Shown here in pieces: positions 15,570-53,400 of a DNA stretch of 64,000 nucleotides. The stretch lies in the NCBI GenBank assembly GCA_020536535.1, contig JAHLWZ010000508.1:1-64000 (forward strand), read 5' to 3'. Under the pieces are notes generated by a model. It searched no databases and had not been told where the DNA came from. It worked only from the letters and a program-made list of their open reading frames with translations. Source of the stretch: Pelomyxa schiedti. Lineage: Eukaryota; Protista; Evosea. Numbering within the stretch: the first letter of the stretch is position 1; each line of letters starts with the position of its first letter. The position numbers and the translations under genes were made by a program.

Positions 15570-16287
15570 TCAAGAAATGAGGGCAGTGAGGTCACAAGGG
15601 AGTTCATCTTCCAGAATTGACATGAGGAGCGCATCAACATATCTCCCTTCTTTAAACGCATAGTGCCTCTTCACAGCCTCATTCTTGAATCCACATCTTG
15701 CATAGCACCTTGCACCCCTCGTGTTTTCAGCCTCGCAAATAAGTTCTACCCTGTGGAGGTTCAGAACCTTGAATGCATATCTGCACAACAGCCACACTGC
15801 CTCAGTCCCAATGTTCTTGCCCCAGAGTGATTTCTCACCAATGGTTATGCCAAGGGATGTATTCCGGCTCTGTTGAATTATCAATAGTAAGTAGACATGT
15901 CTGTTATAACCAGCATCGATAATTTGTTTATCACTCGAATTCGAATGATTGAAATGCCAACCTTCCAATCGACATTATAGAGCCCCCCATAACCAATAGA
16001 AACCCATTCACTGCCGCCACTGTTGTAATCAATTCCAAACACAAAGTCGGTCTGATGCATCACTCCCGATGTTGCCGCCGACGACGTCCGCCGCCTTACC
16101 CACTCCATTGACACCGTTGGGAAGAACATGTACCTTGATTATGGGTTGTTGAATTAGTTGCATTAGCACGTACACAACACACACGAAGCACAGACCTCGT
16201 TACGTCAGGATCGGTTAGCCACTTGTACCACAACTCTGTGTCAGTCTCCTCAATGCTCCTCAGTGTCACTCGAACGCCGACGTCCAT
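15570..16287 (-). CDS. RimJ/RimL-family GNAT N-acetyltransferase, copy 3 (3 exons, more diverged)
   Basis: MDVGVRVTLRSIEETDTELWYKWLTDPDVTR / YMFFPTVS...GYGGLYNVDWK / SRNTSLGITIGEKSLWGKNIGTEAVWLLCRYAFKVLNLHRVEL; same intron positions as copies 1 and 2. Confidence 0.9.
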
Positions 16288-16472: not shown

Positions 16473-19327
16473 TCAACACAACCAACCCCCAGCCCTGGCC
16501 CTCTCCTGCAGTGTTGCTGCCTTGAATCTGTCCTTGCCAACACCCTCACCAAGATAATAACACCTACTAAGCCTGTTCATTGCCTCAGTATTACCAGAAC
16601 CAGCAGCCCTCTGCCACAGTTTCACTGCTTTGTTGATGTCCTGCCCAACACAATCATCACCCCATTCATAGAACACAGCAAGGTTGCACATTGCCTGTGC
16701 ATCACCAGCATCAACAGCCCTCTGGTACAGTGACACTGCCTTGTGATCATCCTTCTTGACACCGCCAATACCCATCTGATAGCAGAGGCCCAGAGATGTG
16801 AAAGAGGAAGCACTCCAGTTAATCTGACCCACAGAGCAAGTGATAGGTTTTTCACGTGATGGGGGCATCTCACTCATTTCAACAAAAAAATGTGCTGCTG
16901 ATGAATCTGGCTTGTCTGTGGATGAAGAGCAGAACATGCACCATGATGCCACAAAGTACATGCAAGACCAATGTTTGGATCTAAATGATGCTGTTGACAC
17001 AAGGTCCTTCCATTCAGAAACACCTTTTGTGTCCCTTAACACACTCATGCAATGTTTCCTCATGTCAGTTGCATGGGAGAGGGGGTGAGAGAAAGTAAGT
17101 GAAAGGCACGTTGGAATGTGCTGATGAAGTGAAACATGATCATTGATTACACAATGGACACAATACAGGAACAACAGAGCAGGGAGGTAATCACACTGAT
17201 GCGAGTCCCCTGAGTTGTGTAAGATGAAGAATAGAAATGAAAATACACACCAGTGGTAGGGATCACCTCACATTCAAAAAGGGAGAATGCGTTGGCAACA
17301 AAAGCAAGGGCAGAGTCAATGTCTCCATTTTCCAACTCCAAAAGTGCTTCCATCATCATCTCGTTTCGTGTGTAAATCAGACTCTTCAAAAAAATGGAGA
17401 CTGGTGGATGTTGTTGCTGAATTGCTGGGCTCTTTTTCAAAAGCAACAAGGTGGTGTTGAAAGTTTCGGAATCCTGTGAAATGTGCCTTGTCCAGAGTGC
17501 TGTCAAAACCAATTCAGGGAGTGTGGTTCTGTGTTTCTTGTTGATGATGGCTCTGGTGTATTCCACGTCTGTGGCTGTGAATGATGCTGTCTTGCCTATC
17601 AGTGATGCTTGAACTGCTTGTTGATGACGACTGTCAGTCTTCATCTGGCAAAGAGAGAGATAATGCAAAAGCAACAAAGCAGGTGAAAAGAAGGGTTCAA
17701 CATCAAGTGCTTTGTTGAGGGTGTCAACACAGTCTTCTGTGGAGGAACCACAAAGAATCTGACATGTTGCTTTGCTTGCCAGTGTTCCTGCATTGGGTGG
17801 GAATTGTGCGTCAGTGAAAAAAGGTGATTCCATTGCAACCTGCATCATTTGTCAGAGGCACAACACAAGAATAAAATGAGAGGAGTTCAGAAGGGCTTGG
17901 TGATTCAATGTTCAGTAGAACCTCAAAGGCACGCAAGAGAGGCATTCTGTTCTCTTGGTCATACTGAAGCAATGAACGAACGAGGTCACAGAACTCTTTT
18001 GGGAACTGTGGCGGTTTCATTGGGAACAGGTCCTCACTCTCAAATGTGAACGTGACCTTTCCACTTGGGCCATAACCACCAGGGTATCCTGGAAGTGGGT
18101 GCTTTCCACACATGGCAAGTTCAAACAGGATGCACCCAAGTTCAAATGATGGTTGCTGTGCAGATAATGAGGGCATGTGACCAACACAGTGGAGAGAAAG
18201 TTTCACTTGATTAAATAGAAAATACCTTTTCACAACACAACGTTGAAGAGTGATCAGGGTTCTGCCTGTATCGCGCAATTCCATTGATTATCTCAGGTGC
18301 TCTGTGACTTGTATTTCCTGTCACAGAAATGAGAGCCATTGTTTCTGTCTCAAATGGCCTTCTTGTTGTGCTGATTCTTGGAAACCTTGTGGCACATCCA
18401 AAGTCAATCAGAATCGCTTGTTCTTTGTTCTGTTGATTAGATTGTGTTTCAGTGAGTAATTAGAGGATGGATGGAGGGGGAACAACAAACTACCGAAGAG
18501 ACAACAATGTTGTCCAGTTTGATGTCAAAGTGAATTATTTGATTCACAAAAAGATGCACAAGAGCAGCACAGATATCCCTTGAATACTTGTGAACAATGG
18601 GCCACGGTGTTGTGTGGGGGCCAAGTTTGGGAGATATGGTGTTGATGTGCCTTGACAATTTTTCCAATGTCTCAGAGTGGTGCTCAAGGACAACCCACAC
18701 ACACGCATGCATCCTCTTATTTGCTGTGTCAAACGCCAGTTCCTTTGCCACAGGTGGGAGGTGGTTGTAATACTCTTGTGGGATTCGGTCTGTAAAGTGA
18801 CAGAAATACCGGTTGATGTTTGGGTGTGGAGCCAATGTGGAAGACACAATGTATTCATTCTGTGATATCAGTGAGAGAAGAGTACTAAAACCACAGGGGC
18901 ACAATACCTCAAAGGCATTCTGAACACTTGTTGTTGTGACACCATAATTGAAGGGAGCTTTTAGGACATAAGACTGGTCCCTGAATAACGCGGGGTGGCC
19001 CTCCCCAATGCACTTCACCTCATAAACAATCCCTGTGGTGTGCAGTAAACAAAAAGACAACTACAACAGCGTCGCTTCTTCGGCGTGTTTTTTTGGGGCT
19101 GTGCTGGATGGAGTGATATGTCAGTGACACACACCATTGCAACCGTGTGAGATGCATCTCACGAGCCTGAAGTTCGTGGCCACCACGATGCTCCCCGTTG
19201 AGTTCTGCACGTCGTTGATTGTGGTGGACGCACCCAGCCTCGTGAAGAACGCGTCGCGGTCACGGATGGATCTCTGAAACTCACCGTAACCAACGACACT
19301 CGGCGCAGTGCTTTGACTGTTGCCCAT
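16473..19327 (-). CDS. Protein kinase (PINK1-like subdomains) with C-terminal Sel1-like repeats and a predicted N-myristoylation site
   Basis: N-terminus MGNSQS. Kinase motifs YVLKAPFNY, HPNINRYFCHFTD, HFDIKLDN, LIDFG, HRAPE and FELGCILFEL. Sel1 repeats LGLCYQMGIGGVKKDDHKAVSLYQRAVDAGDAQAMCNLA and GNTEAMNRLSRCYYLGEGV. Confidence 0.85.
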
Positions 19328-25461: not shown

Positions 25462-28400
25462 TTAATTGTTGTTGTTGGTTGGTGTTGGAGAAAAAAGGGA
25501 AGTGAAGAGGGAGGAGTGAGGCGGGCGCAGGATGGTAAGGTGTGACGCTGGTGTGTGCAGTACCTCCAGGCAGGGAGCTGCTGCCGGCGGTGGCGTGGAT
25601 GATTGTGCGGCGGTTGTGTTTGCGTTCGCGGTGATGGAATGCATTAGGTGTGACCAGTGCTGCTCGGCGTTGTTGAGGGATAGCATTTGTATCACTATCT
25701 CGGGATTGCCATCCCCAAGTACCAAAATTGCGTGGAGTGGAGGTTGGTGCTGTTGCTGGGATGTGGAAGTGTTGTTGTCAGCGGTGGTGACAGTGTCCGC
25801 GGGTGTGGAATTGCTGTTGGTTGGGGTTGTAGTTGAGGGTGATTGTGCGGGTGATGATGTCTGGGGTTCCAGCGTTGTTGCAGGTGATGATTCCATCACT
25901 GCAGTGTTGGTAGGTAGTGTAGTAGTGGGTGCGGTGGATTCCGTGGTTGTTGTAGTGGATGGCGGAGTGGACCGCCATGTGCTTAGTAGCTGTACATGCT
26001 TGCGAACTATGGAGAAGTTGTGCTCGCATTGGGGGCGAGGTACGTGAATATGTGTTTGGAATACTTGCCATACGGACTCTATTGTCTGTGCCTCAGCAAG
26101 TCCATGTGCGAGGGTGTCAAGAGTGTTTCCCTTGATGAGCGTTTCGACACTTACATTGGCTGCTGTCACAGGTAGTATGACCTTGAGAAAAGAAAAAGGT
26201 TAGTTCGGCTGGGTGAAAGTACAGGGAGAATGCCTTTGCTATGTTCAATTCGGTCTGTTCCAGGGCCAGTGTGTGCGGCGGTGAATCGACAAGTACTAAT
26301 TTCTCAATCCACCATGTTTTTTGTTCTCTCTTCGTTACTTGCTCAGCAATACATGCTGCCAGTGCACCCCCAAGGGACATACCACCCATGTGAATGGGAC
26401 CCTCGGGGCATACCGCAGTTATGCTTGAAATACATGCTTCTGCCCAGTCAACAAGCGTGTTAAATGTTGCGGTTCCCTTTTAATTTTATGTATTAGAAGT
26501 TATCAAAGGAATTGACAAGAAACCTTTTGTTCAAGGAGTACAGCAGGGTCATGGAGAGCATAAATTGATCTCCCTGGTAAAGCGTTGCACACATGTTCCC
26601 AGCTTACCGGGGGAGCCCCAGCGCCACATACAAGAAATACGGGTGGGCTACAAGCATGATCTTTCTTTCCAACCCGGAGAGGTGTCAGAACATGTGAAGA
26701 ATTCTGTCGATGTTCGGAGCTGGATGGAATTTCTGTGGAATCAGCACCTTCTCTGAGGGGTTGCAATAGTGATTCAATAAACTTTCCCAAAGAAACTGTC
26801 ATTGCTGTTATGGACCATCCTTGTAAGAATACAGCCATGGGAACGGGCGTTCCAACAACTGCCTCTATTTTACCCTTTAACTCAGCTGCAATGAGGCTAT
26901 CGACACCCTAAAATATGAATTGAGTGTAAGAAAAGGAAGGAAGTATTGCCTACCAACTGGGCAAGAGTAGCTTCTGTGTCAAGTTGCTTCAAAGATACTT
27001 TCAGAACATCAACAATCGATTGCTTTATTGTGGTTGTTATAAGTTGAGCACGATCCTCCTGACTGCTTAGTTGGGAGTACTTGTGGAGGAATGGGGATAA
27101 TGTGGTGCTTGTTTGAAGAGTCGTACTCAGATGTTCTTTGAGCAGACTTAACCACCGGGTATTGTGGCGAAGTTGTGGGAAGGAAGAAAAGAACTCTGGA
27201 AGAGACAAGTCAGAAAGACAGACAACTGGGTGATATGACAGCGGAAGAGGGTCCCGAGAAAGGAGAGCTGTAATAGCAGTTATTGCATCCAAAATTGGTA
27301 TCGGAATGATGCCCTGAAGCTCAGCTTGAAGTTGAGCTTCGCTGCTTAGCCTTGCAAACATACCAGCACCACCACTAATTGGACCTAGATTGATTGTTGT
27401 ACAGGGTAAGCCATGTGCATGTCTAAACTGTGACAGAATATCAAGGAATGTGTTTGCGGCCGCGTAATTTGTTTGGCCAGCTGTACCAGTAAGGGAAGAC
27501 AGTGAAGATGTAAGAATCAGGTTGCGAATAGGAGTGGATAGTGAAGAACAATGGAGATTCCAAGCACCAAATACTTTGGGCAACATCACAGAGAGCATGG
27601 AAGTCTGAGTTTGACGAGGGATAGCCGCATCACAAAGGACACCGGCGCAGTGAACAACAGATACGTCACTGCCAGCATGACGAGTAAACAATTTGCCCAC
27701 AAATACGGAGTCAGAGATGTCACCTTGTTCATAAACAATACGGGTGTTATGTGTGGAGGAAACATGCTGGAGAAATTCAACTTGAGAAGGAGGAATACTA
27801 TTCCGCGAGACGAGCGTGATTGAAGAAGCACCACAGGTTGCCAGAAAACAGGCTAACTGATGTCCAATCCCACCGCTAGCCCCAGTGATGATGAATTTTC
27901 CTCCCACGATGTTGTGTGTAGTAGATGAAAAGTCTCCCTTGAGATCCACAGGGGTAAAATCTAAGACTACCTTCCCTATGTGCCTACATACAGAAGTTAG
28001 AGGAGACAGGAAAGAAATGTGCATACTTGGCTTGTGCCATATAGCGGAAGGCAGAGGCCGCTTCATCGGCTCGGAACGGAGTGAAAGGAAGTGGTTTGTA
28101 TTCTCCTTTTTGAAATTTATCCATAACATCATTCAATAACTTCAGGCCACACTGTGGGTTGGTGGCAAAAAGAGCATCAATGGCAACGATATGGAAGCTG
28201 CAATTATCAGCAAGCTTTCTCATTCCAATTTGAGAGTTTTCATATACATCCCGCTTTCCTATTTCTATGAAGCGCCCGGATGGCTTGAGGAGTGACAAGG
28301 AAGCATCTAAAAGATCTCCAGAAAGTGAATTCAATACAACATCAACACCGGCACCATTTGTTGCTTTTTTCACTTCCTCTACAAAAGAGGCTGAACGAGA

Positions 28401-31400
28401 ATCAAATACATACTTGACTCCAAGTTCTTCCATCAAAAACGTTCTTTTCTCTGTTGTACCAACTGTGGTGATAACGGAGCAGCCACAATTCTGTGCAACT
28501 TGTATTGCTGCAAGTCCAACCCCTCCAGCGCCCGCATGTATTAGGATAGTATCATCTCTCCTTATTCGCGCAATGTCCACTAGAGCATAATGTGCTGTAG
28601 TAAATACCCCAAGTATACTGGCAGCTTGTGGTCCAGAAAGAGTTTTTTCGGGTATCCGAACAACAGCCTGAGCTGGTAATGTCAAGTGTGAAGCAAAGCA
28701 CCCCACATACATTGCTGCAACTGGATCACCAACACACAGTCCAGTTACACTGCTTCCACATCTTTGGACCACCCCTGCACACTCGCCTCCAATAACTGAT
28801 GTTGCGTTCTCCACTGGATACATCCCCAAGGCGATCATCACGTCACGGAAATTGAGTGCAGCGTGAGTAACATGGATCTCTACCTCGTTGTGTGCAGGTG
28901 CTTTCCGTGCAATGTCATTTGTCAACACAAGGCTGTCCAAATTACCCGGATTTCTAAGGCTCAGATGGCACATAGTGCTATTCCCAGTTGTTGGGCTTGT
29001 CAAATTGTTGAAATTCATATCCTCATGATTGATATCCAGGAAGTATTGTTCCTTGCTTCTGAGTACGATATCACTTGAAAGATTTCCAAGTGGCTCTGAT
29101 GCCATATTTGTTCCTTTGTATTGACAACGAATTGTCTGTATCAATGAAGATTCATTCCCTGGAAGGAAATCTACTACAACTGGGCTTAATTGACTTGCCT
29201 CCTGAACTACAACACTGGATACTCCCCGGAGAGCACCTTGTATCAAGGCGTTTGTTGTTCCAGCTTCTCCGGGCATAACAGCTCCATTTGTGGTAACTAT
29301 CCACAACTTCCACTTGACAGAGTCTTCTTTAACAGTTTGCAGAGTTTCAAGGATTATCTGAATAAGGGCTAGTAGAGCGGTAGAACTTTTCACTACTTCT
29401 TGAGGAACGGAGGAAATAGCAGGAGCATCTCGATATTTATCTGCGAATCGGCAATCAACAATATTAACTACAAAGTTTGACATGTTTGCTGAAGGGAGCG
29501 ATTCTGTCTTGAATGTATTTACAGCAACTTCTTTAGGAAATTGAAAGTCAAGATCAGTGGCAATAGTAGCTGCTGGTTGCAATTGCGCCATCAACAAAGT
29601 AGATAAAAACCCAGATTTCTCGCCAACAATAATGAACTTATTCAAGTTTTGAGGAGTATCAGGTTGTTCAAGAATCTTAACCCATGCTGGAATTAAGACT
29701 TTCTGTGTGGCCTTGGGTTTTGGCACACGTTTGCTGACGAAATTGACAATAGAAAGAACTTCTTCATTCCCATGAAAAGTATGCACATTGCCAGAAAGTG
29801 CACCCCCTTCAATTTTGATTGACGTAATGCAAACTGTTATCTTTTCCCCTTCTTTTAATTCCCTCACAGCTGAAGAAAAGGAAACTTTTCCATATGATGA
29901 AGGCAAATAAGCGCATCTTGCACCACTTCCCTCAATAAGAGCACCGGCAATGACTTGGCACACAATATCCAAAAAAGCGGGATGCCCGACACAGAATGGT
30001 GTGTTCGGGGTAGGAGAACTCAATTCGGGAATAACAATATCAGCCCGCACCTCTCTTTCTCCCGTTGAACTATCGGCTTCGACTTGGAGTCCGGATACAC
30101 CCTGGAACAGAGGACCATAACTCAATCCATAGCGTTTCATGAGTGAATAAAACTGCAGTTGGGTTACAGTTTGTAGTGCTGAACTCGGAGGACTAAAAGT
30201 AATGCCGGAAAATTTATTTGTGGGAATTGAGCAGCACCTTGCTACGGATATCCAGTCTCTGTTGCTTCCCCCTCGCATGTGAATAAAAACATCCAGCCTA
30301 CTCCTTCCTCTGGGGTGTGCTACAGTAACTTGAAGAACTACTTGTTCTTCTCCCACAAGAGGAACCATGTGCAATAACTCAATGTCTTGAAGCTCAAAAG
30401 AGACAGGTCCTTTCTCGGAATTTTTTCTCCCGATACCGCAGAAGACTCGTTGTGAAGCTTCTGCTAGAATCTCAATGAATAGTGTGCCGGGTAAAACAAT
30501 GCCACCACTAATAACGTGATCCTTCAGGAAGGGATGGCGGCACAAATCAATCTCCACCAGAAAAATGGAGGAACCTGCTGTAGTTGTGCAGGATGTGAGA
30601 AAAGGTGCTTCTAACCTTTCTGCATCACCGATAGCACCAATTTTGGGTTTCTCTGGGCAACTCTCTTCAGCACCAGTCACCCAGCAGTGCACACGATTCC
30701 AAGCATAACGGGGAGGTGAGATAAAGCGATACAGACTAGAATTCGGTACAAATCTCCCGAGGTCAACAGCGCACCCAAGAGTATGCAGAGTTGCCCCGAC
30801 CTGCGAAATAAGCCATGGGTGACATACATTCCGCTTCAGAGTTGGTATACAGGAGGGTCGTGGGTCTAGTTTTCGCACATATCCACATAGAAGGGGATGC
30901 ATGCCAATATCAACAAATACACCCGAACTTCCAAACTCATTGCCAAGATATTGTAATGCAGACCAGAACTTCACAGGTTGCCGAATTTGGTCTGCCCAAT
31001 AGCTGCTATCTACTTGCTCATTTATAGGCATTCCAGTGAGTGTACTCACCCATAATATTTGGGATTTTTGTGGATGAAGTTGGAGATGGTTGAGGGTATC
31101 AAACAGTTGCTGTTTTGCTTTATCCATGTGGTGGCTATGGTATGCGTAATCAACAGGTAAAACCTTGCAATTAACTTCACCAACCTCTTCATGCAAACGT
31201 GCAAGGAAAAGATCCACTGCTTCCGGATCACCGCTAACAACAGAAGAGGAAGGGGAGTTATCAGAAGCAATACTAACTTGCTTTTCCAATCCCCACTTGT
31301 TAATTCGCTCACCAACGTCTGAAGCTTTCATTTCCAAGTGGGCCATCTTCCCTTTGCCACCAAGTGAGCTGGCAGCTTTTCCACGCTCAACAACAAGTGC

Positions 31401-34400
31401 AACACTTTCACTGAGACTTAGGCATCCACTCATATGAGCAGCACAAACTTCTCCAGTGCTATGACCAATAAATGCTGAGACAGACACCCCAGTTATGTCA
31501 AGAATAGACTTGGCAATTGCATATTGCAGACAAAATAGTATTGGTTGTGCGTACTCGGCGTTTATCACCTCAGCCTTTGTAGAATCGTTAGTAAGGACCT
31601 CTTTGACACTCCAGCCAGTGTTTTGTTTCACTAAGCCATCAACCTCCGCGAAATGAGTTGCAAAACTTCCCAGATTTAGTCCCACAAGTTCATTGACAAG
31701 ACTTCCTATTCCTTCCCACCAACCTCCTTGGCCTGAAAACATGAATACCACCTTGGGTGATCTCAAGGCCTTGTTTTCCACTGCGAAAGCGGTTGGAGAG
31801 GAAGCGGTTGAAGCCTGAGTTCCACGCAAAATTGATGCAAGTGCCGAAGCACTTTCAGCAACAGCAACGTATCGCTTTGCATGTTGTGCGCGGCGAAGAG
31901 ATGCTGATACACATATGTCATGTACACATTCTGGGGATTTTTGTATGGCATCGGCATAGAGAAGTTGCATGGCGTGCAATGACTTAGATGACTTGGATGA
32001 GAGGACCAAAACAGAGTAACTGTCTGATACATGTTCAGAAGAGTGATTTGCGGGCGGAATATATTCACGCATGCACACATGGCAATTTGCACCCCCAAAT
32101 CCATAGCTACTTACACCACAGTATAAAGGTGATTTCGCACGAAGAGGGGTAAGTGAGGTTACAACTTTCAGATTGGCTGCCTCAAAGTCAATATTAGGGT
32201 TTGGGGTTTTGTAGTTAATGGACGGCGGCAGCAAGCGGTTGTGTAAACATAGTGCCAGCTTTATTACACCGGCTATTCCACTTCCGCATTCAAGATGCCC
32301 TATATTCGTTTTTACACTGCCAATATAGCAGCAGTCACCTTCCCTCTTTCCTTTGCCCCCCACTACATTGCCCAGAGCCCGCACCTCAATTGGGTCACCC
32401 AAATTTGTTCCGGTTCCATGTGCCTCAACGTAGGAAACAACGGTAGGATCGATTCCCGCCTGAGCATATCTTAAAAGTTTTAAGCTCATTAATTAGTAAG
32501 AAAATTGTAGGTTACGCTTCACGGAGACAAGCTTCTTGTGCAACTCCACTTGGTGCAGTCATTCCATTACTTCTTCCACAATGATTTACAGCAGAGCCTG
32601 CAATCACCGAATATATTTTGGTGCCTTGTCTTTGTGCATCTTGTAGAGGTAAAAGTATTACGACACCACATCCCTCTCCTCTGACATATCCATCAGCTGC
32701 AGCATCGAATGTTTTGCATCTTCCGTCATGGGACAGCATGCCAGCTTTGCTGAACGTAATACTTATTGCTGGATTGATTAGCGCATTTACACCTCCGACA
32801 ATGGCGGCAGTACAGCCACCAAAGCGCATAGCCTTGCATGCAGAATCCAAAGCAATAAGAGATGAACTACAGGCTGTATCCACAGAAACACTTGGCCCTT
32901 TAGAGGATGGTGAGATGTAACCCAATAGTGCGTTTTGTTACCTTTCAGGTCAAACCAATAAGAGATTCTGTTGGCCGCAATACTCAACGCATTACCTGGA
33001 CCCCCATATGCATCAATAATACGGAAGTTGTTATTGCTGCGGTAAGCATAGTCATTTGTTCCGATTCCCACAAAAACTGCTGTCCTTGAAGAAGAAAGAG
33101 TGGAAGGAAGGATTCCAGCATCTTCCAGTGCTTCGTAAGTACACTCCAATAGCATGCGTTGCTGTAGGGAATTAGGGCTCAAAAAAAATTTCACTCTGAA
33201 ACCTGTGGGTCCATGTGGGTTGCCTCTCTATAAGAGATTCCGAAAAACTTGTGGTCAAACATAGAAATGTCATCCACAAAGCAACCCCATTTGGTGTGAA
33301 GCTTTCCAGGTTCATTAGTATTCGCACTATAGAGCAAGTTATTGTCCCAGCGGAGAGTTGGAGTTTCGGATGCAGCACAGATGCCGGAGCATATAAGGTC
33401 CCAGAAGGCATCAGGTGTGGGACTTTTTGGGTATCGGCAGGCCATCCCAACCAGTGCAAATTCGTTTTTGGGAACATCAGCACCACTTAGAATTGTTCGA
33501 GAGATTGGGATTGGTAACTCATTTAAAACTGGTGCCCCAAGGTGTGTAGACAGTTTATCAATAGTTGGGTAGTCAAACAGGTTAATAGGGTTCACCCTGG
33601 TTCCCAAAAAGTCACCGAGCTTATTACTAATATTAATGGCTGCCATGCTGTCAAAATTAAACTCTTGGAAAGGTGCGGAGCTATCAATTAATGTCGCAGG
33701 TGTATGGGAATGCTGTGATACAGCATCAATTAAGAAGGCTTTTATCTGTTCAACAGTCTTATGAACTCTTTGAACTTTTTCCTTTGTTTCTGTGGTTTTT
33801 GAGTCCTGGTACTGTTTTGATGGGAGAAGAGGTGAAACAACAGGTTGTGGTTCAAAAAATGACCAGTTGATGTGTGCAGCCATTAGTTGACCACAGACAG
33901 GAGACGAAATACAATAATGGAATAGATTGGAAAAGTCCGCATAAGAAAGAGGTAAAATTCCCCTGGATTCAAGAAGTTCTTGAGCAATCTCACCTACACG
34001 GGAAAACATCCCTCCTCCTAGAACTGGACCAAGGTTAAGGGCTAGTGCTGGCAACCCCTTCCGCACTCGGCATAGGACTAATTCATCAACAAACGCATTT
34101 GCGGAAGCATAATTACATTGTCCGAGGTTGCCCAAGACTGAAGCCATGGAGGACAGAACGATAAAGAAGTCCAGTTTCTTTTTTTCTGTTGCCTTGTGAA
34201 GGTTCCACGCGCCAAGCATTTTTGGACTTGTAACTGGAGTAAAGTGTGTTTCAAAGTTTGAGATGTCTCTTATGAGCTTATCATTGACAACTCCAGCAGC
34301 ATGCACAACTCCGCACAAGACCTTGTGTCTCACATTTTCACAGTCGTCAACAACCCGTGAGATGAAAAGGGGATCAGCAACATCTCCAGTCTCAATGACA

Positions 34401-37400
34401 ATTTCTACATCTCTTTTCCGGAGATCATCAATAAGCTGTCGAATCTCCGGCTTGGGTTCATGCTTTCCTAGACACACAATGTTCCTTGCACCACTTTCCA
34501 CAAGAATCTTCACAATTTCGGACCCAAGTGCTCCAAAGGCACCTGTGACCATGTAACATCCTGATTCTGGTATAGTCGGTTGCTTTATTCCAAGGGGAGA
34601 GGCTCTTTGTAATTGGAATTGCCAGACTTTTTCGCAGTTTAAGGCGAACTCGGATCCATGTTCGGCATGCAACAAAAGGGACAATACCTGAATAAATTCT
34701 TGTTGGGTGGGATTTGATGCCGATATATCAACGTGAAGAAGTACACAATTTTCAGAATACTCTTGGGATGCGCACCTCAGCATACCACAGGCAGAATTTT
34801 GAGTGCAAAGAAGGGAAACATCTTCCTCAGAAAGAGTAGTATTATCCGGGATTGTATTAGAGCATATACCTTTGGTAAGAACAACCAAACGGGTTTTCTT
34901 TTTGGGAAGAGACTGTAGGATGTGAAGTAAACCAGCAAGACACCCATCAATAAGGTCTAGAGTCCATGCAAACACAATGTAGTCTGGATTTACTTCACTG
35001 ACAACTCGAGAAACGGAATTGTCATCAAAAGGGTTTATTTCATTACCCCTGATCTCATTCAGAGGCAGTGTTGTATTGGCAAGGATACAATGTGTTTGAA
35101 TGCCAAAGGAGTTACTTAGTTGGGCGATACTATTGCCAGCTCCGCTCTTATCACTCAAAATCAACATAATTCCTTCAGTTGCAGTGAAGCTGGAATGAAC
35201 TTTTTCCACGGGGAGCCACGTCGGTGTGTAAAGCATTGATTCAACAGAAACGCTTTCACTGAATTTCTGCCATTCCATACCAGATATTTGGGCTACAATG
35301 CTCTCTGGACCATCTTTGTCATGAAGGGAAATTATAATGTCTCCACATATACTACTTGGAGTGGTGGATGTGATTTTTGAGTGTGAAATCAGAGTACCTC
35401 CAGTGTATTTATTTCTCAAATGGAAGCACCGTACTTTCGATGGGAGATAAATACCCCGACTTCCAATGGTAGGGTTATTTGAGAGTACTGCTGATACTCC
35501 CAGTCCTTGTATGCATGCATCCAGAATTGCCGGATGAAAATTGTAAGACTCAATCTCACCTTGGGATATGGATGAAGGCGGGAGGACAAGGCTAACAGCC
35601 TCATCCTTTCCAATCCACAATTCCCCAAGACCAGAAAAACTGGTACCCAGCACTAACCCACCTCTAACAGCAATCTTTCTGCGAATCGTATTGCCTTTAA
35701 TGCTCTCTGGTCTACATCTGCTCTTGATATCTGCAAAAGATTCCCAAGAATGGATTGTTGATACAGAGGTATCCTGAGCCTGTACCACAGCACTGCAGTG
35801 ATGAGTATCAACATCATTCACTTTGACGTGACTGGTGAATTTGACTCCAACTCGATGTTGGCTCATATCTCCGTCAAAAGAGACCTTCATCACACGCTGC
35901 TCGGAACTGGAGAAAAATAATCCTCTTACAAATGCTACATCAAACACCACAATTGGGGATACTGAGGGGAAAACTGCTTTTGCGCATGCTAGAGCGCATT
36001 CCAGATACAGTACACCCGGGACAAGGGTCATATCTTGGAAGGCATGGTGCTTCACATAGGACAGCTCTGGGGAAGAGAAGTCTATTTCGCACTCTTTTGA
36101 GGCTTCTAGTAGTAGTCCAGAGAGCGGGTTGGACTGTGCTAATTCCGGCTTGCTTATCCAGCAACGAGTTGGAAGGAAGGGATAGTGTGGAAGATCATGG
36201 GAAGAGGCAGCAGGTGTATTGCCGCACAGTTTTTCTATGTTAACATCAACTCCGCTGGAATATAGCGCAGCTACACAGCGGAACATAGACCTCACAACAT
36301 TTCTAGGTTCTCGCTCCACAATAGGGAAGCAAACTGAATCGCTTTCTACAGTCATAGGAATGTGGTTGACCAAGATGGGAACTGGAGAAACCTCTAGGAA
36401 CACATTACAACCATAGTTACTTTGAGCAAGCTTAACAGCCTGATAGAAACGGACAGGAGCAGTTATCTGTTTTACCCAGTAGTCGATATCCACGCCCTCC
36501 TTACCCATAGTAGTTACGTCAGCTGTTGATATCCACACAACATCAGTAGTTGGCGGAGTTCTAAGTAAACCCTGCGCCATAAGAGTGTTCTTGAAGGTAG
36601 CTTGAATAGGTTTCATGTGGTGGCTATGGTATGCATACTTTAAAGAAAGTATTCTCACACCACTTGAGGGAACTATCTTTTCAGAAACAAGTGATTCACA
36701 TAATAAGTTGACTTTATCACGATCTCCAGAGATGACACAGGAATTTGGACTATTCTCTACTGCCACAGATACAGTCTCACCGATAGCATGATCGGAAATG
36801 TATTTTCTTACAGTGTCACCAGAAACTCCACGGAGACTTGCCATTGACCCATCATCATGAACTTGATTCATATTCTCACCTCGGGCCAGAATGAGCATTA
36901 CTGCATCTCTCAAGGATAGATACCCGCTGACCCAGGCAGCAACTACTTCTCCAGTACTGTGGCCAATTACAACTTGGGGGTGGTTGACACCCAGTTTCCA
37001 TAAAGCTTCACATAACGCAACCTGAATAGAAAACAACGCCGGCTGTGCATATTTGGTTTGCTCCAGTACACTCGCCTGTCCGCTTCTTGCATCCTTCAAA
37101 ACCTCAATCACACTCCAGCCTACTTGTTCCCTTATAAGGGAGTCAACGTTCACTAAAGCCTCTGAGAATGGAGGGAAATCAGCTTGTAGTAGTTGCTGGG
37201 CCACAGACCACCACTCACTGCCTTGGCCACAGAAAACCAGGCACAGGTGGGTACCCGAACTTGGCAGAGAGCCGTGCAGAGGGCCCGAGGTCTTGGAATG
37301 TGGAGAAATATCAGAGAGTTGCTGAAGGCAATCCTCAAGACTGTCACACACAACCGCCAAACGGTATTTCAGATGGGCTCTCTTCTTGATTGTGGCAGCA

Positions 37401-40400
37401 CAAACACGAGGCAGGGGAACGCTAGTGCATTTCAAGAACTCCAAATAACGAGAGGCCAATGCAGGTATTGCGTCGGAACTGGCTGCTGACAGTGCAAGCA
37501 AACAGTATGGCAAACAGACTTTGGCCTGGTCATCCTTTGAGGGGAGAGCAGTGATAGGAGGGCACTTCAGCACTACATGGCAGTTCGTGCCACCAAAACC
37601 AAAGCTACTTACTCCTGCACATACTGGCCCTGTTGTGCTGCACAGGCTGTGTATAGATTCCACCTCAGTCTGTACACTAACACCCAACCTTTCGAAGGGA
37701 ATGTGAGGATTTGGCACAGTAAAATGCAAGGAAGGCAAGAGCGTCCTATTGTGCAGAATGAGTGCTGTTTTGATGATTCCCGCAATTCCTGCGGCACTCT
37801 CCAAGTGTCCAATATTTGTCTTCACACTGCCGACTCTCCAACAACAGCTTCCATCAGTTTTGGGCATTCCACCAGCACCACTTCCCCTGAGAGCCCTGCT
37901 GAGAGCAGAGGCCTCGATGGGGTCACCTAAAGCCGTCCCAGTGCCATGGGCCTCAATGAATGCGATAAGTGGTTTTTGTTCCTCGGAATCGCTTCCAGTT
38001 AGCCCTGCATTGTGAAAAGCCATTGCAATGCACTCCTCTTGAGCAGCTCCATTGGGTGCTGTTAATCCATTGGACTTCCCAACATGGTTTATGGAGTGAC
38101 CAAGAATGAGGGCATAGATATCGTCTCCATCACTCAGGGCCCTGTCCAATGTTTTCAGCAGCACAGCACCACATCCTTCTCCCCGGACATAGCCGTCAGC
38201 ACTTGCATCAAAAGTGTGGCAGCGTGATCTTGGGGATAGGAAGCCACCACTTTCAAGAACTCGATCAATCTCGGGAGACAGAAGGATGTTTACACCACAT
38301 GCCAGAGCCGCATCACAGGAACCCTCTCGCAGGGAAACACAGGCATGGGAAACAGCAACAAGAGATGAACTACATGCAGTATCAATAGAAATACTTGGTG
38401 CCCTGGAGTTAAGAAAGTAGCTGACTCTATTGGAAGCAACAGCGAGGGAACAACCTGTTGCTGCATAGATACTGACGGATTCACCTTTCGTTCCTCCATA
38501 AAATAGCATGTGACTGTACTCAGAGAAAGAAATGCCCAAAAAGACACCGCACTTTGACAGTAATTGAGTATTTCCAGTTGCTCCAGCATCTTCCAGTGTT
38601 TCCCACGCTGTCTCCAGTATAAGCCTTTGCTGAGGATCCATTGAACAAGCCTCAGCATGAGAAATAGAGAAGAAATTATGGTCGAACTCATCAACTGCTG
38701 AAAGATAGCCAGCTTGCCTTTCATTCCCCAGGTTTGGGAGGCCACGGCGACGGGAAGAACAAGGGAGTCCTATTGCATCCTGCTTTTCACATAAAAGTCT
38801 GTAAAAATCTCGAGGTCCATGTGAGTTTCCAGGGAAGCGGCACCCTATCCCAACAATGGCAATTTGCTGAGACTGAGAGTGGAGCTGTGGAGTTATATGG
38901 AAAGTGGGGCTTGTTGTTAGGAAGTGAGAAAGAAGAGCAATAGTTGGGTGGTCATAAAGCTCTGTGGGAGAAATTGAACGATGCATCCACTTCTGCAGCT
39001 CTGAAGAGAGTTCCACCATGTGAGTAGATGTGAGTCCAAATTGTGTGAATGGTTGATTAATATCGACATTTTGTGGCTGTGTTTGAAGAAGCCGTGCGAT
39101 ATGAGTTTGCAACCATAACAGTACTTCTCTCTCATCTGGTTCTTTCACCTCATTTTGCGGTGGTGCGTAAAGTTGGGGTTCCACAGAAGAGGTTGCTGTG
39201 CATGATGTATGGGAGTAAACAGCCTTAAGCCTGTTATTCAAGAAGGCTGTCTTGGTTGCCGATCGTTGTATTTTACCACTGGTCGTCTTCAAAGCAGATC
39301 GTGGAGAGATCAACACAATGTGAGAAGGGGAGACAGTATGTTCTTCAAAAAGTTTTCTGCAAAATCATTTGAGTCACAAGCCGGACAGGATAGAAACACA
39401 CTGTTGTATTGCAAGGCAGATTTCTTTGGCTTCCTTGGGGCTTAACTTTGGTGAGGCCACTTCTGATGTTACAACAAGGGCTTCCTGAGAGGTTTTAGGG
39501 TTACCAACATAAATAGGCTAGGCCACTAACCATTTCATTTTCATCTATCGAGAAAGCAGCTGAACAGCCAGGTCTTATTGCTGGGCTACTTTGTTCTGCT
39601 GAAAGCTCAATATCTTGAGGGTATATCTAGAAACAAACTTTGAGGGTTATGAGTCCGCAGGAAGTACTTGGTACATTTCGGCCATTAATGATAATCAAAT
39701 CTTTAATTCTGCCTGTAATGAACAGTTCTCCACGCCGGATAAAACCAGCATCACCAGTACGCAAAAATTTATCAGTGCCTTCACTTAAAGTTGCATAGAA
39801 CACTTCTTTGGAAAGGTCGGGCCTATTCCAGTAGCCAATACTTACACACTTGCTGCTTACCCATATCTCTCCAACCTCCCCTTCTGGCTTTTCAGTCCGG
39901 GCTTGTGGGTCTACAATTAGCAATTTCACAGGGCACCACCCATGTCCAACAATGGTGTGTGCTGAGGGAGAGGTCCTTTCATCTACTTCAACGGCAACAC
40001 CAGATTCCAGCTTTTTGGCATCAACGTAAAGGATGGTAGGGTGTTTATCCTTGTTGGCAATACCCTTTCCACAAAGGTACACCATGTCTAGAATGGAAAT
40101 CAATTTTGGAGATTAAGAGAATAAAGTAAAGTATTACTCACGCTCAGCAAGGCCATAATGTGGGTACCACATCTCGAATTTAAATCCGCAGGAGGAAAAT
40201 CTGTCATGAAACTTTACCAGAGTGGGGAATCTGACAGGTTCAGCTCCATTTATCGCAAAGACGAGGGATGATAAATCAAAGAGCTTTATCTCCGCATCAG
40301 TGCATTTCTTAGCACATACTTCATAGGCAAAATTAGGGGCCGCTGTGTGCGTGGCTCTGTATGCAGTGCAAACTGCAGGCCACAGCTGAGGCTCCCCAAT

Positions 40401-41942
40401 AAATTTTACAGGTGAGAACATAACACATGCTGACGGGACAAAGGCAGCATGGAAAACACCTGCAATAAGTCCCATATCATGGAAAACTGGAACCCAAGCA
40501 ACCATAACACTTGAAGGTGCTGTTCCACTGTGTTTTGACATCACACGTAGGTTGTGCAGGAGAGTCTGGTGTGTGAGGATAACTCCTTTTGGTTGTGATG
40601 TGGATCCTGAAGTATATTGCAAGGCAATCATATCTGTTGGTTCCGGCCAGTAGGGAGGCTGAAATTTGATGGTAGGGGATTTTGATGAAGTTATGGTGGA
40701 GGAAGTGCGTGGTGCTGGTGGAGACACCCATTTGATTCCTCCTCGTGACCACAAACCACCAAACACACTGCTGCCTATCCCCCCAAACACACTCTTTAGT
40801 GTGTAGTATCGTAGCATAGATTGCGGCATAAATCCCACTTTTGCCCCACAGTCTCTGGCTATAGCGCCAATATGGTCAAATCCCTTTTTCAGTTGGGCTG
40901 GAGATGGAGGAGGCACAGGAACAGCAATAACGCCAGCCAAGACACAACCAAATAAGGCGCTGACAAAATCAAGTCCTGTTACATATGCCAGAAGAACTCT
41001 TTCCCCCTATCACCGGTAAGAGCACAAGAAATTTCATCTTTTTTTGACACCTTGGCCAACTGAAGGTCATGCAGAATGAAGTCTGAGACGGAAGCAGCAT
41101 TTTTGTAGAGCATGCTATAGGTAATGGATTCCTCAGTTCCGTTATCGTTTAAAAAAACGTAGATTGTGAGGTCTGGGAAGTATTGCAAGTTGTGCTGGAA
41201 CGCTTCAGTTATAGTCTTGGCCTCTATATCGAGAAGTGAAATCATGATTAGTACGGCAGATAGATACCTAAGCACAACGGGATGTCATTATTGTAGTAGT
41301 ACGAGTTGGCACTCTGAAGATTAAGAAAGGGTTTCCTGGCTATGACTTTGGCCACAGAAGGGTTAACAGTCAATCCAACACCACTTGAAGAAGTAGTCCC
41401 TACAAACGCATGAACCGTTTAAAAAAGAAAAGAGGAGTGTTTTTCCAAGTTCGTTGCAAGCTAAAAAAAAAAAAAAAAAACCCAACAAATGGGGTCAGCT
41501 CCCCATAATGGCATCTCATACCCTTTCTTCTCTTTCTCCTAACGAACGCGCCCCTGGCCAGGGCCACGCCGGCAACAGCGAAAGTGACAAGAACAGACAC
41601 AGCCGCGGCGGCCAACGCGCTGCCGCCGCAGCCCCCGCCACGCGACCACCACCAACCAACCACCACGACGACTGCTGCGCCGCAAACAACACTGCCACGC
41701 GACGGCGGAGAGGCACCACCACTCGCACTACGAGGAGGAAGTGGCGATGGTAGTGGCGGCGGAGATGTAGTTTGTTGCTGTTGTTGTTGATGAGGATGAG
41801 TTGGGCTGGCGGGGTCGTCGGCGGCGGTGCGGGGGTGGTTGGTAGTTGTTGGGGTAGTGGTTGTGGTGGAACTTGTGGGAGAATCATAAGGGGCGGTGGA
41901 TCTGGTCGTCGGTGGCGACGGGGAGGTAGGTGACGACGACAT
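25462..41942 (-). CDS. Bimodular type I PKS/FAS megasynthase: N-terminal hydrophobic segments-FAAL-ACP-KS-AT-DH-KR-ACP-KS-AT-DH-ER-KR-ACP-TE (~5000 aa, roughly 14 introns)
   Basis: FAAL: LQYTSGSTSQPKGV, WVPVFHDMGLI, NGAEPV, YGLAE, RTGDAG, KTTSGKIQR. ACPs: GLTS, NFDS, GVDS. KS (x2): DTACSSS, HGTGT, NIGHLE. AT (x2): GHSTG. DH: HAFQDMTLVP and HVISGGIVLP. ER: LNFRD, HAGAGGVG. KR: TGAFGALG/YASAN and TGASGGIG/YAAAN. TE: GMSLG, VDS, ASHL. Confidence 0.95.
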
Positions 41943-42219
41943 CGCGTGCGGCTCGTGCATCGCCTCGCGATCTATTTTTTTTTTCTTCTTCTTAGTTTGT
42001 TGTTCTCTGGTTTTGCTTTTTCGGTTCCTTCGACAGTTTGTTCAAAAAAGAAAAATAGTTTTGATGCGACAGTCTTCTGCTGTGTGTATGTATGAGGACT
42101 TGAAAAAGAACCTCAGGTGCCCTGCAACCAAAACGTGGCATTTTCCAGTCAGCATTTTTTCCAATCAGCAACCGAAATCGTCGATTCATCGGAATTTGAA
42201 ACAATCAAAAGGAGGAGGG

Positions 42220-43450
42220 ATGAGCGCTACTGGGGCAGTGGACGTAAGCGTCAGCGGATCTGCGTCTGGATCTGGGGGTACCATCGTGGTGTGTGACGTG
42301 GACGGCACTTTGACCAAGCCCCGCAATGTATGTGTCCGCCAATTGGGTTTCCCCCGTTCGAGCGAGATTGGGGAGAGTCTGAATGTGCGTTTGACCCCAT
42401 TATGCGAAAAAAAACAGGTCGCCACTCCCGAAATGACTGCTTTTTTGGCGCAAGTGAGGACCCACGCAAAGGTGGCCATTGTGGGTGGATCCGATTTCAC
42501 CAAAATACAGGAGCAAATGGGGAAAGACAGTAAGTACCACTAATTTATCTTGTTAATCTCGGTATATATAATGTATTGAACAGTTTTGAACCGCGTGGAT
42601 TACTTATTTTCTGAGAATGGTCTCATGGCTTACAAAAACAGCGAACTTATAGCTCAACAAGTAACGAAGTTACCATCTTTATTGCATCCCAAAACCATGA
42701 CTAGAGCATCAAGAATTTCTTGGGAGAGGACAAATTGAAGCAGTTTATCAATTTCTCCCTCCACTACATCGCCGACTTAGACATCCCCATAAAAAGGTCA
42801 CTTTCATGTTTTAACATCCTCTCCCTACACCTCCTAATATTAATTCCAGAGGAACATTCATAGAATTCCGGAACGGAATGCTCAATGTATCACCCATTGG
42901 TCGCAACTGCACACAACAAGAAAGAGACGACTTCTTTGCATATGATAAGGTAACTCCAAACACAAAAAACAAATCCTCAAAATCACCGGCACCATCCTCA
43001 CAAAAGTGACAGATTCACCACGTACGCGAGAAAATGGTGCAAGAGTGCAGAACTCGCTTTGGATCCTTTGGGCTTCAGTTTTCCATCGGCGGGCAGATTA
43101 GCTTTGACGTATTCCCTACTGGCTGGGACAAGACGTACTGCCTTCAATTCCTTGAGGGAAAATATGACAGGATTCTGTTCTTTGGAGACCGGACAGAACC
43201 GGTATCACATACACAAGCACTTGCAAATATCTATGATAGCTGTTAGTAACATTCCCAATCAACACTCACCAAAAAACAAACAAACACAGGGCGGCAATGA
43301 TCATGAAATCGCTGTATCACCCAAAGTGTGTATTACCACCCGCTTTAACAACCAATCCATAACACATACACACAGGTGCACCAGTCATTCACAGTCACTG
43401 GGCCAGATCACACCATCACCATAATGAAGGAACTCTTTCACCTTGCTTGA
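42220..43450 (+). CDS. PMM: Phosphomannomutase (eukaryotic HAD-IIB), complete, multi-exon
   Basis: [80 protein letters not shown]. Confidence 0.97.
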
Positions 43451-50434: not shown

Positions 50435-53400
50435 TTAGGGTCTCAGCTTGCAATAGGTGGTAAAATCACCCCAATAAGCAGTGTACCCAGAGTCCTGGAA
50501 TATGACCCTCCAGTGTCGCCTGTTGTCATTGCTGTCTACCTCTGTCCTTACTGGTACCAGTGTTGTTCCAGCCAGTGTTCTCGTTGTTGGACATCTCTGA
50601 ACAACAGCGAATTGCCAGTGGAAGCTGATTCCAACCTTGAGGCCCAGTGTCACTGTCCACCACCATCCATCGCCATCTATTGTTGTTCTGGTCATAGTGG
50701 CTCCTTTGGAGAAGTCCAGGGCCCCCAGCTCCGGAATATCGCCGCATATGGACAGAACTTGGTCCGCGTGGTGGGTTATGTAGTGGATGTTGAACTGAAG
50801 CAGGGCCGGGATTCTGCCACAGGGGTCGACGAGGTCGAATGTGAGTTTGTATATGTTGGGTCCCTGGCACAGACAGCAGAAGCTGTAGCCGCAGGAGCAG
50901 GAGACAAGGTTGCAGCCACCTACGTCGTATTGGATTGGCCGGTTGCACCTGGGGCAACCCCGCGTGTTGTTGGCAATCCACTGTTGAAATGTTAGAATAT
51001 TGAAACCGGAACATTGAATTGCCATCTACCTGTGCGGATAGAGCGTCTTCTTCCAAAACTCTTTTCTGTTTCTTTGCTTCTGGCTCGTGCACAAATAGCT
51101 TCTTGGAAATGTCCTCACACCTGCTCAGATATTACTTTCTGAGACATATATACAGTTGGGAAAAAAGTAAAAATACACACCGGGAACCCGGGTGATACTG
51201 GAGGGAGCACCTCGCACAAAAGTGAAATCCACACTCCCCACATATTGCCTCATCGCAGACAACAAGACCTCCATAACTACATCTGGGGCACCGAACGAAA
51301 TCCGACATAATGCTTAACGTTTCCTGGAGCAGTCTTTCTTCAAAAGCGGCTTTGTTCCGAACGGAAGCCCTGAATGAGATTAATGGGAGTAATAATGTGG
51401 AAATACTGACAATATATCGTAATAAGAGGCTAAAGAGAGACATCCACGCCTTGGACAGCGGGGATGTGTTGACATGTTGTTTTTGAACCATTGATCCAAG
51501 CAATTCAAACAGAATCTGAGGTGCATTAAAAAGATATGTTAAGGTAATAGAGGTTTCAACGCACGCATGCGAACAACGACTCAAAGAAAGAAGGAGGCCC
51601 TCTTCCAGACAGATCCCACACAACCCCTTTGTTGGAGGTAATGGGGTCGGCTCTGACAGTTCATTGAAAATCTGCACCTGAGACTCTTTTGGATATTGCA
51701 TAAGACACTGGGAGGAACAGTGTGTGCCAAGGGGAAGTGCTTTAATGGGAGGATGGTCTGTAAATAGTATACATGCGGAGTTCATTAGGAACTGTACCAG
51801 CTGGGGATTGGAGTTCTTTATGGCATAGTCAATTGGGGTCATTTCCGGGAGGTCGTCATGTGCCTTGCAGTGGATCCTGCAATCAGCTCCAGATTCAACA
51901 AGCAGTTTGCATATTTCTGGAAAATTTCCAGCAGCTGCAGCATGCAAAGGAGTTTCGCCATATGGTGGGACAACTACTTGCGCTTTCACCCCACGCTTAA
52001 GAAGAGTGAGTACACCTTCAATGCATCCATGTTCACAGAGAAGATAGAGAACACTTGGAGGAATGGCAAGGAAACTCGTGGTGGGTACAAAGCCAGCAGG
52101 AGGTGTACGAAATTGTGAAGGATCGATATCACATAGTGGCGCAGCCCGTGCAAAGCGAGTGAACTGCACAGAATCCAATCCCCCACTGGCAAGACAGAGG
52201 GCCGCATAGTCCAGACAAGAGGGTTTAGTCTTCCACGTCACAGGGTGTGCGGATTCATTGCGCATGCATCCCCAGCGCTCCTTGAAATCTCGTGCACAGA
52301 GTCCTTCCAAGGCATCATCAGTTGTATTGTCAAGAAGCAGGTGAAGCAGGGGAACTGCGGAATGTTTTGTAGGAGCATCACTGAGAGCACGAACCAAAGC
52401 TGGTGAGAGTTGCCGACAGAATGAGAACTGGGAATAGGGAGAGCCCATGCACCTCTTGGGGGCCAGGACAGAGGAAGCCCCGAATCGCAGCAGTAGTTCG
52501 ACTGCCTGAGGGTAATGATCCACTGCCGAAGCAAGTGCCCGGCAGTCGTTTGGATTAACTCCGGAGAGGAGAAGTAGCTCAGCAGGCTCAACTCCCCATT
52601 CCAGAGCGCATAGAAGTAGCGATTTCTTTCCAAAGAGTTTTGGGAGAACTATACCTCGCAGGTCGAGAGGTAGAACTATTGGCTCAGTATCAGCAGGACG
52701 AGTTGTAACTTTAGTGGAGCAGTTCGATAACCCAGGTAGGGTTGTATGGCTCCGGATTTCCCGGTCTGTTTGAGTGACAAGTGCCTTCAATAGGGCGATA
52801 TTTCGGCGCACCAAAGAAGCTTCTAGAGCTACTAATTGGGTGCATCCATTACTTATTGATAAAGCACTGCGGGGCATGCGACCGGAATTTCGAATTTCAT
52901 TCAGAATTCCATCGATGAAGTTCCAGGTCGTATAACGAAAAATCATTGTGATCTGTTCCTGAGGAACAGTTTGGCGTGCAACTTTTGGGTTTTTTATTTG
53001 CCATTCATAAGGCACATCAGCCGGAATAAGAATTGGTGGCTGACGGAGTGGTAGTGGGTCCCCATAATCGTCCGATATTTCTTTCACATCCAGTAATTTA
53101 TAAGGTGATAACATACTTGGTATGGTCAGCAAACATGAAAGGGAAAAGAAACAGACACCTTTTATCAGGTACGGCGTGAAAGAGCCTTCCTAAATCGGAC
53201 ACAACCAAAGTACCATTTGTGTAACACTGTATCCCTAATTCTAGGCATGACACAGGGCACACCCAGCGAGAAACGTTATCTAATTGCATAAAGCGCTGCA
53301 GGTCCTTCATGCTTGTGCGGGAAATAATCCACTTTAAAATAAGAGTAACCTGAGTGTGAGACTGCGCAGAAGGCAGCGAATCCGCGGCAATCTTCAATGC

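Follow-up and report, generated by a model that had tools for sequence, protein, structure and literature searches.

CpFAS1 of Cryptosporidium parvum begins with an acyl ligase–acyl carrier protein (ACP) loading part, continues with three fully reducing modules, ends in a reductase and is viewed as an elongase of pre-formed fatty acids (PMC2995488, PMC6568194). A synthase of comparable layout is encoded on the minus strand of a 64,000-nucleotide stretch of DNA from Pelomyxa schiedti, namely positions 1 to 64,000 of contig JAHLWZ010000508.1 (assembly GCA_020536535.1), which is called the window below. Like this synthase, CpFAS1 and CpPKS1 are eukaryotic single polypeptides in which a ligase and an ACP form the loading part and are followed by modules of the bacterial type, consisting of ketosynthase (KS), acyltransferase (AT), dehydratase (DH), in some cases enoylreductase (ER), ketoreductase (KR) and ACP. 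However, the number of modules is three or seven in the two C. parvum enzymes and two in the Pelomyxa synthase, and the former end in a reductase, the latter in a thioesterase (TE); the C. parvum enzymes are also intronless, and no N-terminal anchor has been reported for them. In the Pfam search no NAD-binding reductase domain was found after the last ACP (ACP2), so the release feature that defines apicomplexan FAS1/PKS1 is absent. CpFAS1 is the nearest characterised eukaryotic analogue and works in a similar manner, the comparison being one of architecture.

Several other systems share single features with the Pelomyxa synthase. In Ols of Picosynechococcus sp. PCC 7002, a fatty-acyl-AMP ligase (FAAL) and an ACP also stand directly before KS-AT, but there is only one module (with KR only), which is followed by a sulfotransferase and a TE and gives a terminal alkene, whereas Pelomyxa has two reducing modules. 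No sulfotransferase match was obtained by Pfam anywhere in the Pelomyxa protein, that is, the off-loading pair of Ols is not present, and a Symploca protein (P0372) with a sulfotransferase and a hydrolase domain does occur among the FAAL matches. In the mycobacterial systems FadD32/Pks13 and FadD26/Pps, the FAAL likewise passes a long-chain acyl group to the ACP of a polyketide synthase (PKS), but it is a separate protein there, and Pks13 joins two long chains in a single Claisen condensation without any reduction. The dictyostelid enzymes Pks16 and Steely are type I PKSs of Amoebozoa too, but they are single-module, iterative and without FAAL.

In our reading, to which a probability of about 0.75 is given, the locus is a functional nuclear gene of P. 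schiedti encoding a bacterial-type cis-AT modular type I PKS, which takes a fatty-acid starter, delivers a product four carbons longer, probably carries a membrane anchor and is of bacterial origin. After a Ser/Thr/Pro-rich N-terminus and one hydrophobic helix, the domains are arranged in the order FAAL-ACP-KS-AT-DH-KR-ACP-KS-AT-DH-ER-KR-ACP-TE, and Pfam matches appear in that order on the stop-free minus-strand pieces between 25465 and 41284. All the catalytic motifs that were checked are intact in Pelomyxa and in Mastigella, as seen in a three-way alignment with Paratrimastix. DTACSSS, EAHGTGT and NIGHLE are present in both KS domains and provide each module with a Cys-His-His triad (C1062/H1204/H1251 in KS1 and C2868/H3003/H3044 in KS2). 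The AT domains, detected by Pfam as Acyl_transf_1 in each module (E ~4e-46), contain the motifs YAQPALF, GHSTGE (in both) and YAYH. DH1, both halves of which are picked up by Pfam, has H1838 and D2013 (DxxxQ), and DH2 has H3637 and D3820. The KR tyrosine lies within NYA(S/A)AN in both modules, and the Asp of the LDD position is kept in both KRs (VND and LCD), which may be read as B-type. Module 2 has an ER with the motif LIHAGAGGVGLAA and an intact GGVG motif; no ER domain was found by Pfam in module 1, and a methyltransferase domain is absent among the domain matches of the synthase. The serines of the ACPs are S844, S2637 and S4814, with one ACP for each extension module in addition to the loading ACP. 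The residues that the preliminary description had listed for KS, AT, DH, KR, the three ACPs and TE were all recovered in this way.

The gene model was rebuilt by walking the deposited protein P0001 along the window DNA. It extends on the minus strand from 41960 to 25462 and has 15 exons and 14 introns, with a coding sequence (CDS) of 15,777 nt that corresponds to 5258 aa and a stop. The spliced translation is identical to the deposited 5258-aa protein (NCBI nr; 91,024-bp contig), which is the sole member of its own 90% cluster and shows ~93–100% identity to the window in every tblastn piece. The gene had earlier been placed at 25462–41942; the lower end proved exact, while 41942 is the second ATG (Met7), upstream of which the model starts at 41960. 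An alternative start, the ATG in "MISLLD" (~41246), was rejected, because in the gene model that yields P0001 it belongs to intron 2, and Mastigella also has the upstream helix. Exon 8 (33203–39356, 6154 nt, aa 734–2785) runs unbroken from the C-terminal subdomain of the FAAL through the loading ACP (ACP0) and the whole of module 1 into KS2; exon 11 (28027–32469, 4443 nt, aa 2986–4466) spans KS2 to ER; and exons 12 and 13 link ER/KR2 to ACP2 and ACP2 to TE. In Mastigella eilhardi, a member of the same family (Pelomyxidae), a transcript from the EukProt transcriptome contains a single open reading frame (ORF) of 5063 aa (P0378) with the same 14 domains, which is colinear with P0001 over aa 193–5088 at 40% identity and has the identical Pfam order. 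Because the exons bridge the module boundaries and because of this 5063-aa ORF, a single polypeptide is supported. The claim of the preliminary description that FAAL loading, two extension modules and a TE are united in one polypeptide is therefore borne out by the exon map, the exact P0001 translation and the Mastigella ORF, and the "amoeba-like" host it had proposed is indeed P. schiedti, a free-living anaerobic archamoeba.

The introns of the gene are 41–54 nt long except for the first (122 nt), and 13 of the 14 are GT-AG. The last one (26182–26233) is GC-AG, a class that makes up 1.59% of P. schiedti introns according to the genome paper, in which the mean is 7.43 introns per gene (PMC8887013). 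Apart from the long exons, the introns fall within the FAAL, KS2, ACP2 and TE domains. The presence of two giant exons with introns clustered at the ends fits a transferred, once intronless gene that has slowly gained introns. As to placement, 7/14 lie in the first 2.2 kb of the CDS and 4/14 in the last 2.4 kb. The GC content of the synthase CDS is 0.46 and that of its third codon positions (GC3) 0.39; GC3 is 0.36–0.46 in several neighbouring ORFs, and two GC-rich unannotated ORFs have 0.58 and 0.68. In composition and introns, then, the synthase agrees with the host.

These features also bear on whether the gene is an artefact, that is, symbiont or other bacterial DNA mis-assembled into a scaffold of the amoeba, or a fusion of several genes made in annotation. 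The draft genome was obtained from seven cells and consists of 5337 scaffolds (PMC8887013), the source being amplified single cells of a symbiont-filled amoeba (PMC8887013, PMC10579272), and local assembly problems do exist, since window positions 1–1088 are a 92% copy of 41546–42625 beside a gap of N. However, 14 short canonical introns, many of them inside domains, restore the frame; the composition is host-like and eukaryotic genes lie on both flanks; the giant exons cross the module boundaries, and in Mastigella a single expressed ORF has this architecture. Given the exon spans, the introns, the composition and the Mastigella ORF, a mis-fused annotation or a symbiont contaminant is very unlikely, and the artefact explanation can be regarded as already effectively refuted.

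The loading domain is identified from its sequence as a FAAL and not a fatty acyl-CoA ligase, with hand-over of the acyl group to the ACP predicted. The Pfam AMP-binding match covers aa 199–623 (E 2.5e-50) and the C-terminal subdomain aa 666–779. The ANL motifs YTSGSTSQPKG, YGLAE, TGD, GRIKDLIIINGRN and TSGKIQR are located at aa 378–389, 531–537, 645–652, 662–674 and 759–765, respectively, and the core motifs A3, A5, A7, A8 and A10 (Lys) are all present and conserved in two orthologs. Among the NCBIfam models, fatty-acid-AMP ligase families rank first (PRK05850, FadD21, FadD28 and FadD32), and the best solved structures are 7r7e/f/g (E 6.5e-111), in whose alignment the gaps are only 1–3 residues and the insertion segment is retained; these structures are the FAAL domain of the Picosynechococcus sp. 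PCC 7002 PKS (PMC11837247). In the piece from exon 5, the alignment to FAAL profiles begins at residue 20–26 and that to CoA-ligase profiles only at residue 44–64, and only FAAL models cover the FAAL-specific insertion region. ACP0 (Ser844) comes directly after the FAAL in the same exon. The FAAL loading proposed at the outset thus agrees with both the family models and the structures. Since the scores against the FadD21, FadD28 and FadD32 models of NCBIfam are far under the family cut-offs, the Pelomyxa FAAL is not an ortholog of the mycobacterial FAAL families.

At the other end of the protein, an alignment with bacterial TEs shows no variation at Ser4972 (in GMSLG) and His5233 of the TE and almost none at Asp5002. 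An AlphaFold2 (AF2) model of the TE, which contains a disordered Thr/Ser/Pro-rich insert (aa ~5094–5157), has a predicted local distance difference test score (pLDDT) of 73.5 and a predicted template modelling score (pTM) of 0.74. The top Foldseek matches of this model are all TE domains of PKSs, non-ribosomal peptide synthetases (NRPSs) and fatty acid synthases (FASs) (prob 1.00), the Pks13 TE among them, and the domain is thus modelled as folding like a PKS/NRPS thioesterase, an alpha/beta-hydrolase with a Ser-Asp-His triad.

At the N-terminus, ~110 Ser/Thr/Pro/Gln-rich residues are followed by LAAAAVSVLVTFAVAGVAL (aa 116–134) and then by RRKRRK, which runs into exon 2. The Kyte-Doolittle 19-mer score of aa 116–134 is 2.42, the maximum in the whole protein. 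The equivalent helix of Mastigella occupies aa 18–36 (2.38) and is followed by RAARGR; no equivalent N-terminal helix was found in the Paratrimastix protein. The helix and its basic patch are probably a signal-anchor, which would place the catalytic domains on the cytosolic membrane face, and such an anchor, if true, would be unusual for a megasynthase.

As for relatives, a full-length word-indexed search returned only giant bacterial PKSs and the Paratrimastix protein, and the Mastigella ortholog emerged once the query was limited to FAAL-ACP; an exhaustive search of representatives ranks by summed score, so that bacterial proteins with many modules are favoured and the nearest single relatives are hardly revealed. 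The FAAL-ACP regions closest to that of Pelomyxa, among large proteins, are those of bacterial FAAL-PKS proteins and Mastigella. In the KS tree, KS1 of Pelomyxa pairs with KS1 of Mastigella and KS2 with KS2 (SH-like approximate likelihood ratio test, SH-aLRT, 99 each), and the two-module layout is therefore older than the Pelomyxa–Mastigella split. Both pairs fall within a supported (96) bacterial KS group, most members of which directly follow FAAL-ACP; this is the result of the KS phylogeny that the preliminary description had suggested as a check. Against solved structures, KS1-AT1 scores up to 565 bits with bacterial modular PKSs (CurL 522, DEBS 420–457), compared with 384 for Dictyostelium Pks16, 368 for LovB and ~300 for animal FAS. 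The KS domains thus appear closer to bacterial modular KSs than to iterative eukaryotic PKS/FAS, mainly by score ranking, as the tree holds no eukaryotic iterative KS, and for the KS and FAAL domains alike the likeness to bacterial FAAL-primed modular PKSs is greater than that to enzymes of dictyostelids, fungi or animals. It is most likely, judging from these comparisons, that a common ancestor of Pelomyxa and Mastigella obtained the gene from bacteria and that the gene later took on host introns and host composition.

The top-scoring FAAL-ACP relatives among large proteins (704–756 bits) are P0383, from the metagenome-assembled genome (MAG) GCA_003565555.1, and P0259, from a metagenome. Both have the domain set of Pelomyxa module 1, but they differ in their FAAL-FAAL tandem and single module; TE, phosphopantetheinyl transferase (PPTase) and MBOAT are separate genes downstream of P0383, and further PKS genes come after P0259. 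The P0383 locus (L001 8001–21271; PXBH01000059.1) shows FAAL-FAAL-ACP-KS-AT-DH-KR-ACP and then the TE, PPTase and MBOAT acyltransferase genes; this compact lipid-modifying cluster may serve as a model for the state before fusion. In the flagellate Paratrimastix pyriformis, KAJ4461522.1 (P0254, 6229 aa) has the same domain order as Pelomyxa with an extra C-terminal NADAR region, and its DH1 is degenerate, His and Asp both being lost. Approximately unbiased (AU) tests neither reject nor prove a module-by-module grouping with Paratrimastix (p 0.49 and 0.56). About 1300 residues of this protein (aa ~4930–6229) lie past the TE and end in NADAR, and its KS1 has an insert of ~100 residues; the former may stem from a fusion in the gene model and the latter from an intron left unspliced, so that neither need be a real feature.

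The mechanism proposed here follows from the domain order and motifs under the standard colinearity rules. The FAAL would adenylate a free fatty acid and load it on ACP0 without CoA. KS1 and AT1 would then add one malonyl unit, and KR1 (B-type) and DH1 would leave a trans-2-enoyl chain, because module 1 is without ER. Module 2 would add a second malonyl unit with full reduction, so that the double bond would come to lie at C4. Finally, the TE would free the chain as a (4E)-alk-4-enoic acid with the carbons of the starter plus four, either as free acid or passed to an acceptor, while the N-terminal hydrophobic helix and basic patch would tether the enzyme to a membrane with its catalytic domains in the cytosol. 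As extender we lean towards malonyl, because of the YAQPALF and GHSTGE motifs and the lack of a methyltransferase domain.

Several points weigh against this reading. HAFH is the textbook AT motif for malonyl and YASH that for methylmalonyl; YAYH is neither, and the choice of extender is to that extent not certain. PKS modules can also be skipped or iterate. DH1 has HxxxDxxxxP instead of HxxxGxxxxP, where the Mastigella ortholog retains Gly, and if DH1 were inactive a 5-hydroxy acid or a delta-lactone would be predicted. The TE is highly divergent, with an identity of at most 30% to any aligned TE, and its release chemistry is not readable from sequence. The assignment of the membrane anchor comes from hydropathy and from conservation in two species, and the expression as one ORF is that of Mastigella, the Pelomyxa gene being known here from DNA and annotation. 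The KS tree singles out no donor lineage, since its eukaryotic clades branch in one polytomy together with cyanobacterial, myxobacterial and Chloroflexota-like sequences.

The 5-hydroxy fatty acid that an inactive DH1 would give, cyclised by the TE to a delta-lactone or given to an acceptor in the manner of the Pks13 TE, is a quite improbable product. In its favour are the replacement of Gly by Asp in HxxxGxxxxP, the weakness of the GYxYGPxF motif (GLVLGTSF), the loss of both His and Asp of DH1 in Paratrimastix and the presence of the Pks13 TE among the fold and profile matches. Against it, Pelomyxa still has the catalytic residues His1838 and Asp2013 (DxxxQ), the canonical motif is complete in Mastigella and both halves of DH1 are detected by Pfam. 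An alternative that deserves attention, although on balance it is doubted, is that the synthase is an elongase of primary metabolism, as proposed for CpFAS1, which would extend scavenged fatty acids for use in the lipids of membranes or cysts and introduce unsaturation without oxygen, and would not make a specialised secondary metabolite; it departs from the preferred reading in biological role only, the chemistry being the same. CpFAS1, in which the same logic of acyl ligase-ACP loading and reducing modules is found, is described as an elongase (PMC2995488), and P. schiedti is anaerobic and without beta-oxidation (PMC8887013). The gene is moreover conserved in two Pelomyxidae and possibly also in an anaerobic flagellate, and the putative membrane anchor would fit lipid supply. 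On the other hand, a trans-4 double bond is not usual in membrane lipids, and the degenerate DH1 of Paratrimastix means that the product is not conserved. A further, rather unlikely proposal is that of a membrane-anchored line that makes longer unsaturated or hydroxylated chains from scavenged fatty acids independently of oxygen, for the membranes or cyst walls of anaerobic protists, and goes back to one bacterial acquisition, passed between Archamoebae and Preaxostyla; it draws support from the anchor common to Pelomyxa and Mastigella and from the AU tests, which do not reject the Paratrimastix grouping.

The coordinates of the gene and its parts are collected in Table 1.

Table 1. Parts of the P. 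schiedti synthase gene, given as window positions.
Feature	Position	Strand	Evidence
Whole gene	25462..41960	-	Spliced translation = P0001
Exon 1, aa 1–146: Ser/Thr/Pro/Gln-rich stretch and hydrophobic helix	41522..41960	-	Kyte-Doolittle; putative N-terminal anchor
FAAL, aa ~147–780; exons 2–7 and start of exon 8, 6 introns within	39270..41399	-	Pfam, NCBIfam, PDB 7r7f, motifs
ACP0, aa ~815–880, Ser844 in GLTS	38915..39115	-	Pfam PP-binding; motif alignment
Module 1 in exon 8: KS1 897–1335, AT1 ~1440–1750, DH1 ~1825–2100, KR1 ~2335–2515, ACP1, KS2 start	33203..38870	-	Pfam on 2057-aa open stretch; motifs
Module 2, exons 9–12: KS2 aa 2698–3126 (3 introns), AT2, DH2, ER ~4170–4465, KR2 ~4495–4680	26954..33161	-	Pfam; motifs
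ACP2, aa ~4785–4840, Ser4814 in GVDSL, split by intron 26953–26908	26524..26990	-	Pfam PP-binding; exon map
TE, aa ~4895–5258, triad S4972/D5002/H5233	25465..26650	-	Pfam Thioesterase; alignment; AF2/Foldseek

The flanks of the gene are eukaryotic and include a phosphomannomutase (PMM), a Dus-like exon, filamin, Sel1, GNAT and an ankyrin-IBR ubiquitin ligase. Neither a PPTase nor any lipid gene was detected within the window. The PMM gene (41890–43421, plus strand) is divergent from the synthase, with the start regions a few hundred bases apart, and the two may have a common promoter region. The copy at the left end of the window (1–1088) is a direct one, taking in synthase exon 1 and the upstream region with the PMM start; it is followed by the 100-N gap at 1089–1188, and the translated exon copy is 86% identical. 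The copy may mark the beginning of another synthase gene whose remainder lies to the left of the window, or it may have arisen in assembly because the DNA came from amplified single cells. The ankyrin-repeat and IBR (RBR-type) ubiquitin ligase (51135–54222, minus strand) is 91% identical to the hypothetical protein Pelo_6410 of P. schiedti, of which a 62% identical paralog, annotated RNF14, lies on another P. schiedti contig. C-terminal halves of GNAT are encoded by the ORFs 13836–14228 and 15573–15974 (minus strand; E 2.5e-10 and 1.2e-12), and a Sel1-repeat ORF is found at 16476–17267; the GNAT and Sel1 ORFs are without evident link to the synthase.

In full-text searches of the literature, no paper was found that ties Pelomyxa, Mastigamoeba, Protostelium or Paratrimastix to the synthase. 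A 2026 survey lists FAAL-PKS fusions in diatoms, Preaxostyla and other eukaryotes, without functional work (PMC12820801). The statement of the preliminary description that this architecture is not characterised can therefore be retained, but its novelty was overrated, because the gene is already annotated publicly, eukaryotic FAAL-PKS fusions have been catalogued (PMC12820801) and the combination of known bacterial modules is an ordinary one. In summary, the synthase is real, intact and as yet uncharacterised; it belongs to a well-known type of enzyme and occurs in an unusual host.

Archamoebae are not known for polyketides, and the papers found on Pelomyxa and Mastigamoeba are silent on this gene. 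What the locus offers is a bacterial fatty-acid-primed assembly line that anaerobic amoebae have preserved whole and domesticated by the addition of introns; with two modules and a TE it is a compact eukaryotic model for the hand-over from FAAL to PKS. If the anchored line shared by Archamoebae and Preaxostyla were true, the lipid pathway would be a new one, and the enzyme would be the first polyketide synthase to carry a transmembrane anchor of its own. The predicted product, if true, would be an unexplored lipid in organisms that are unable to use oxygen-dependent desaturases.

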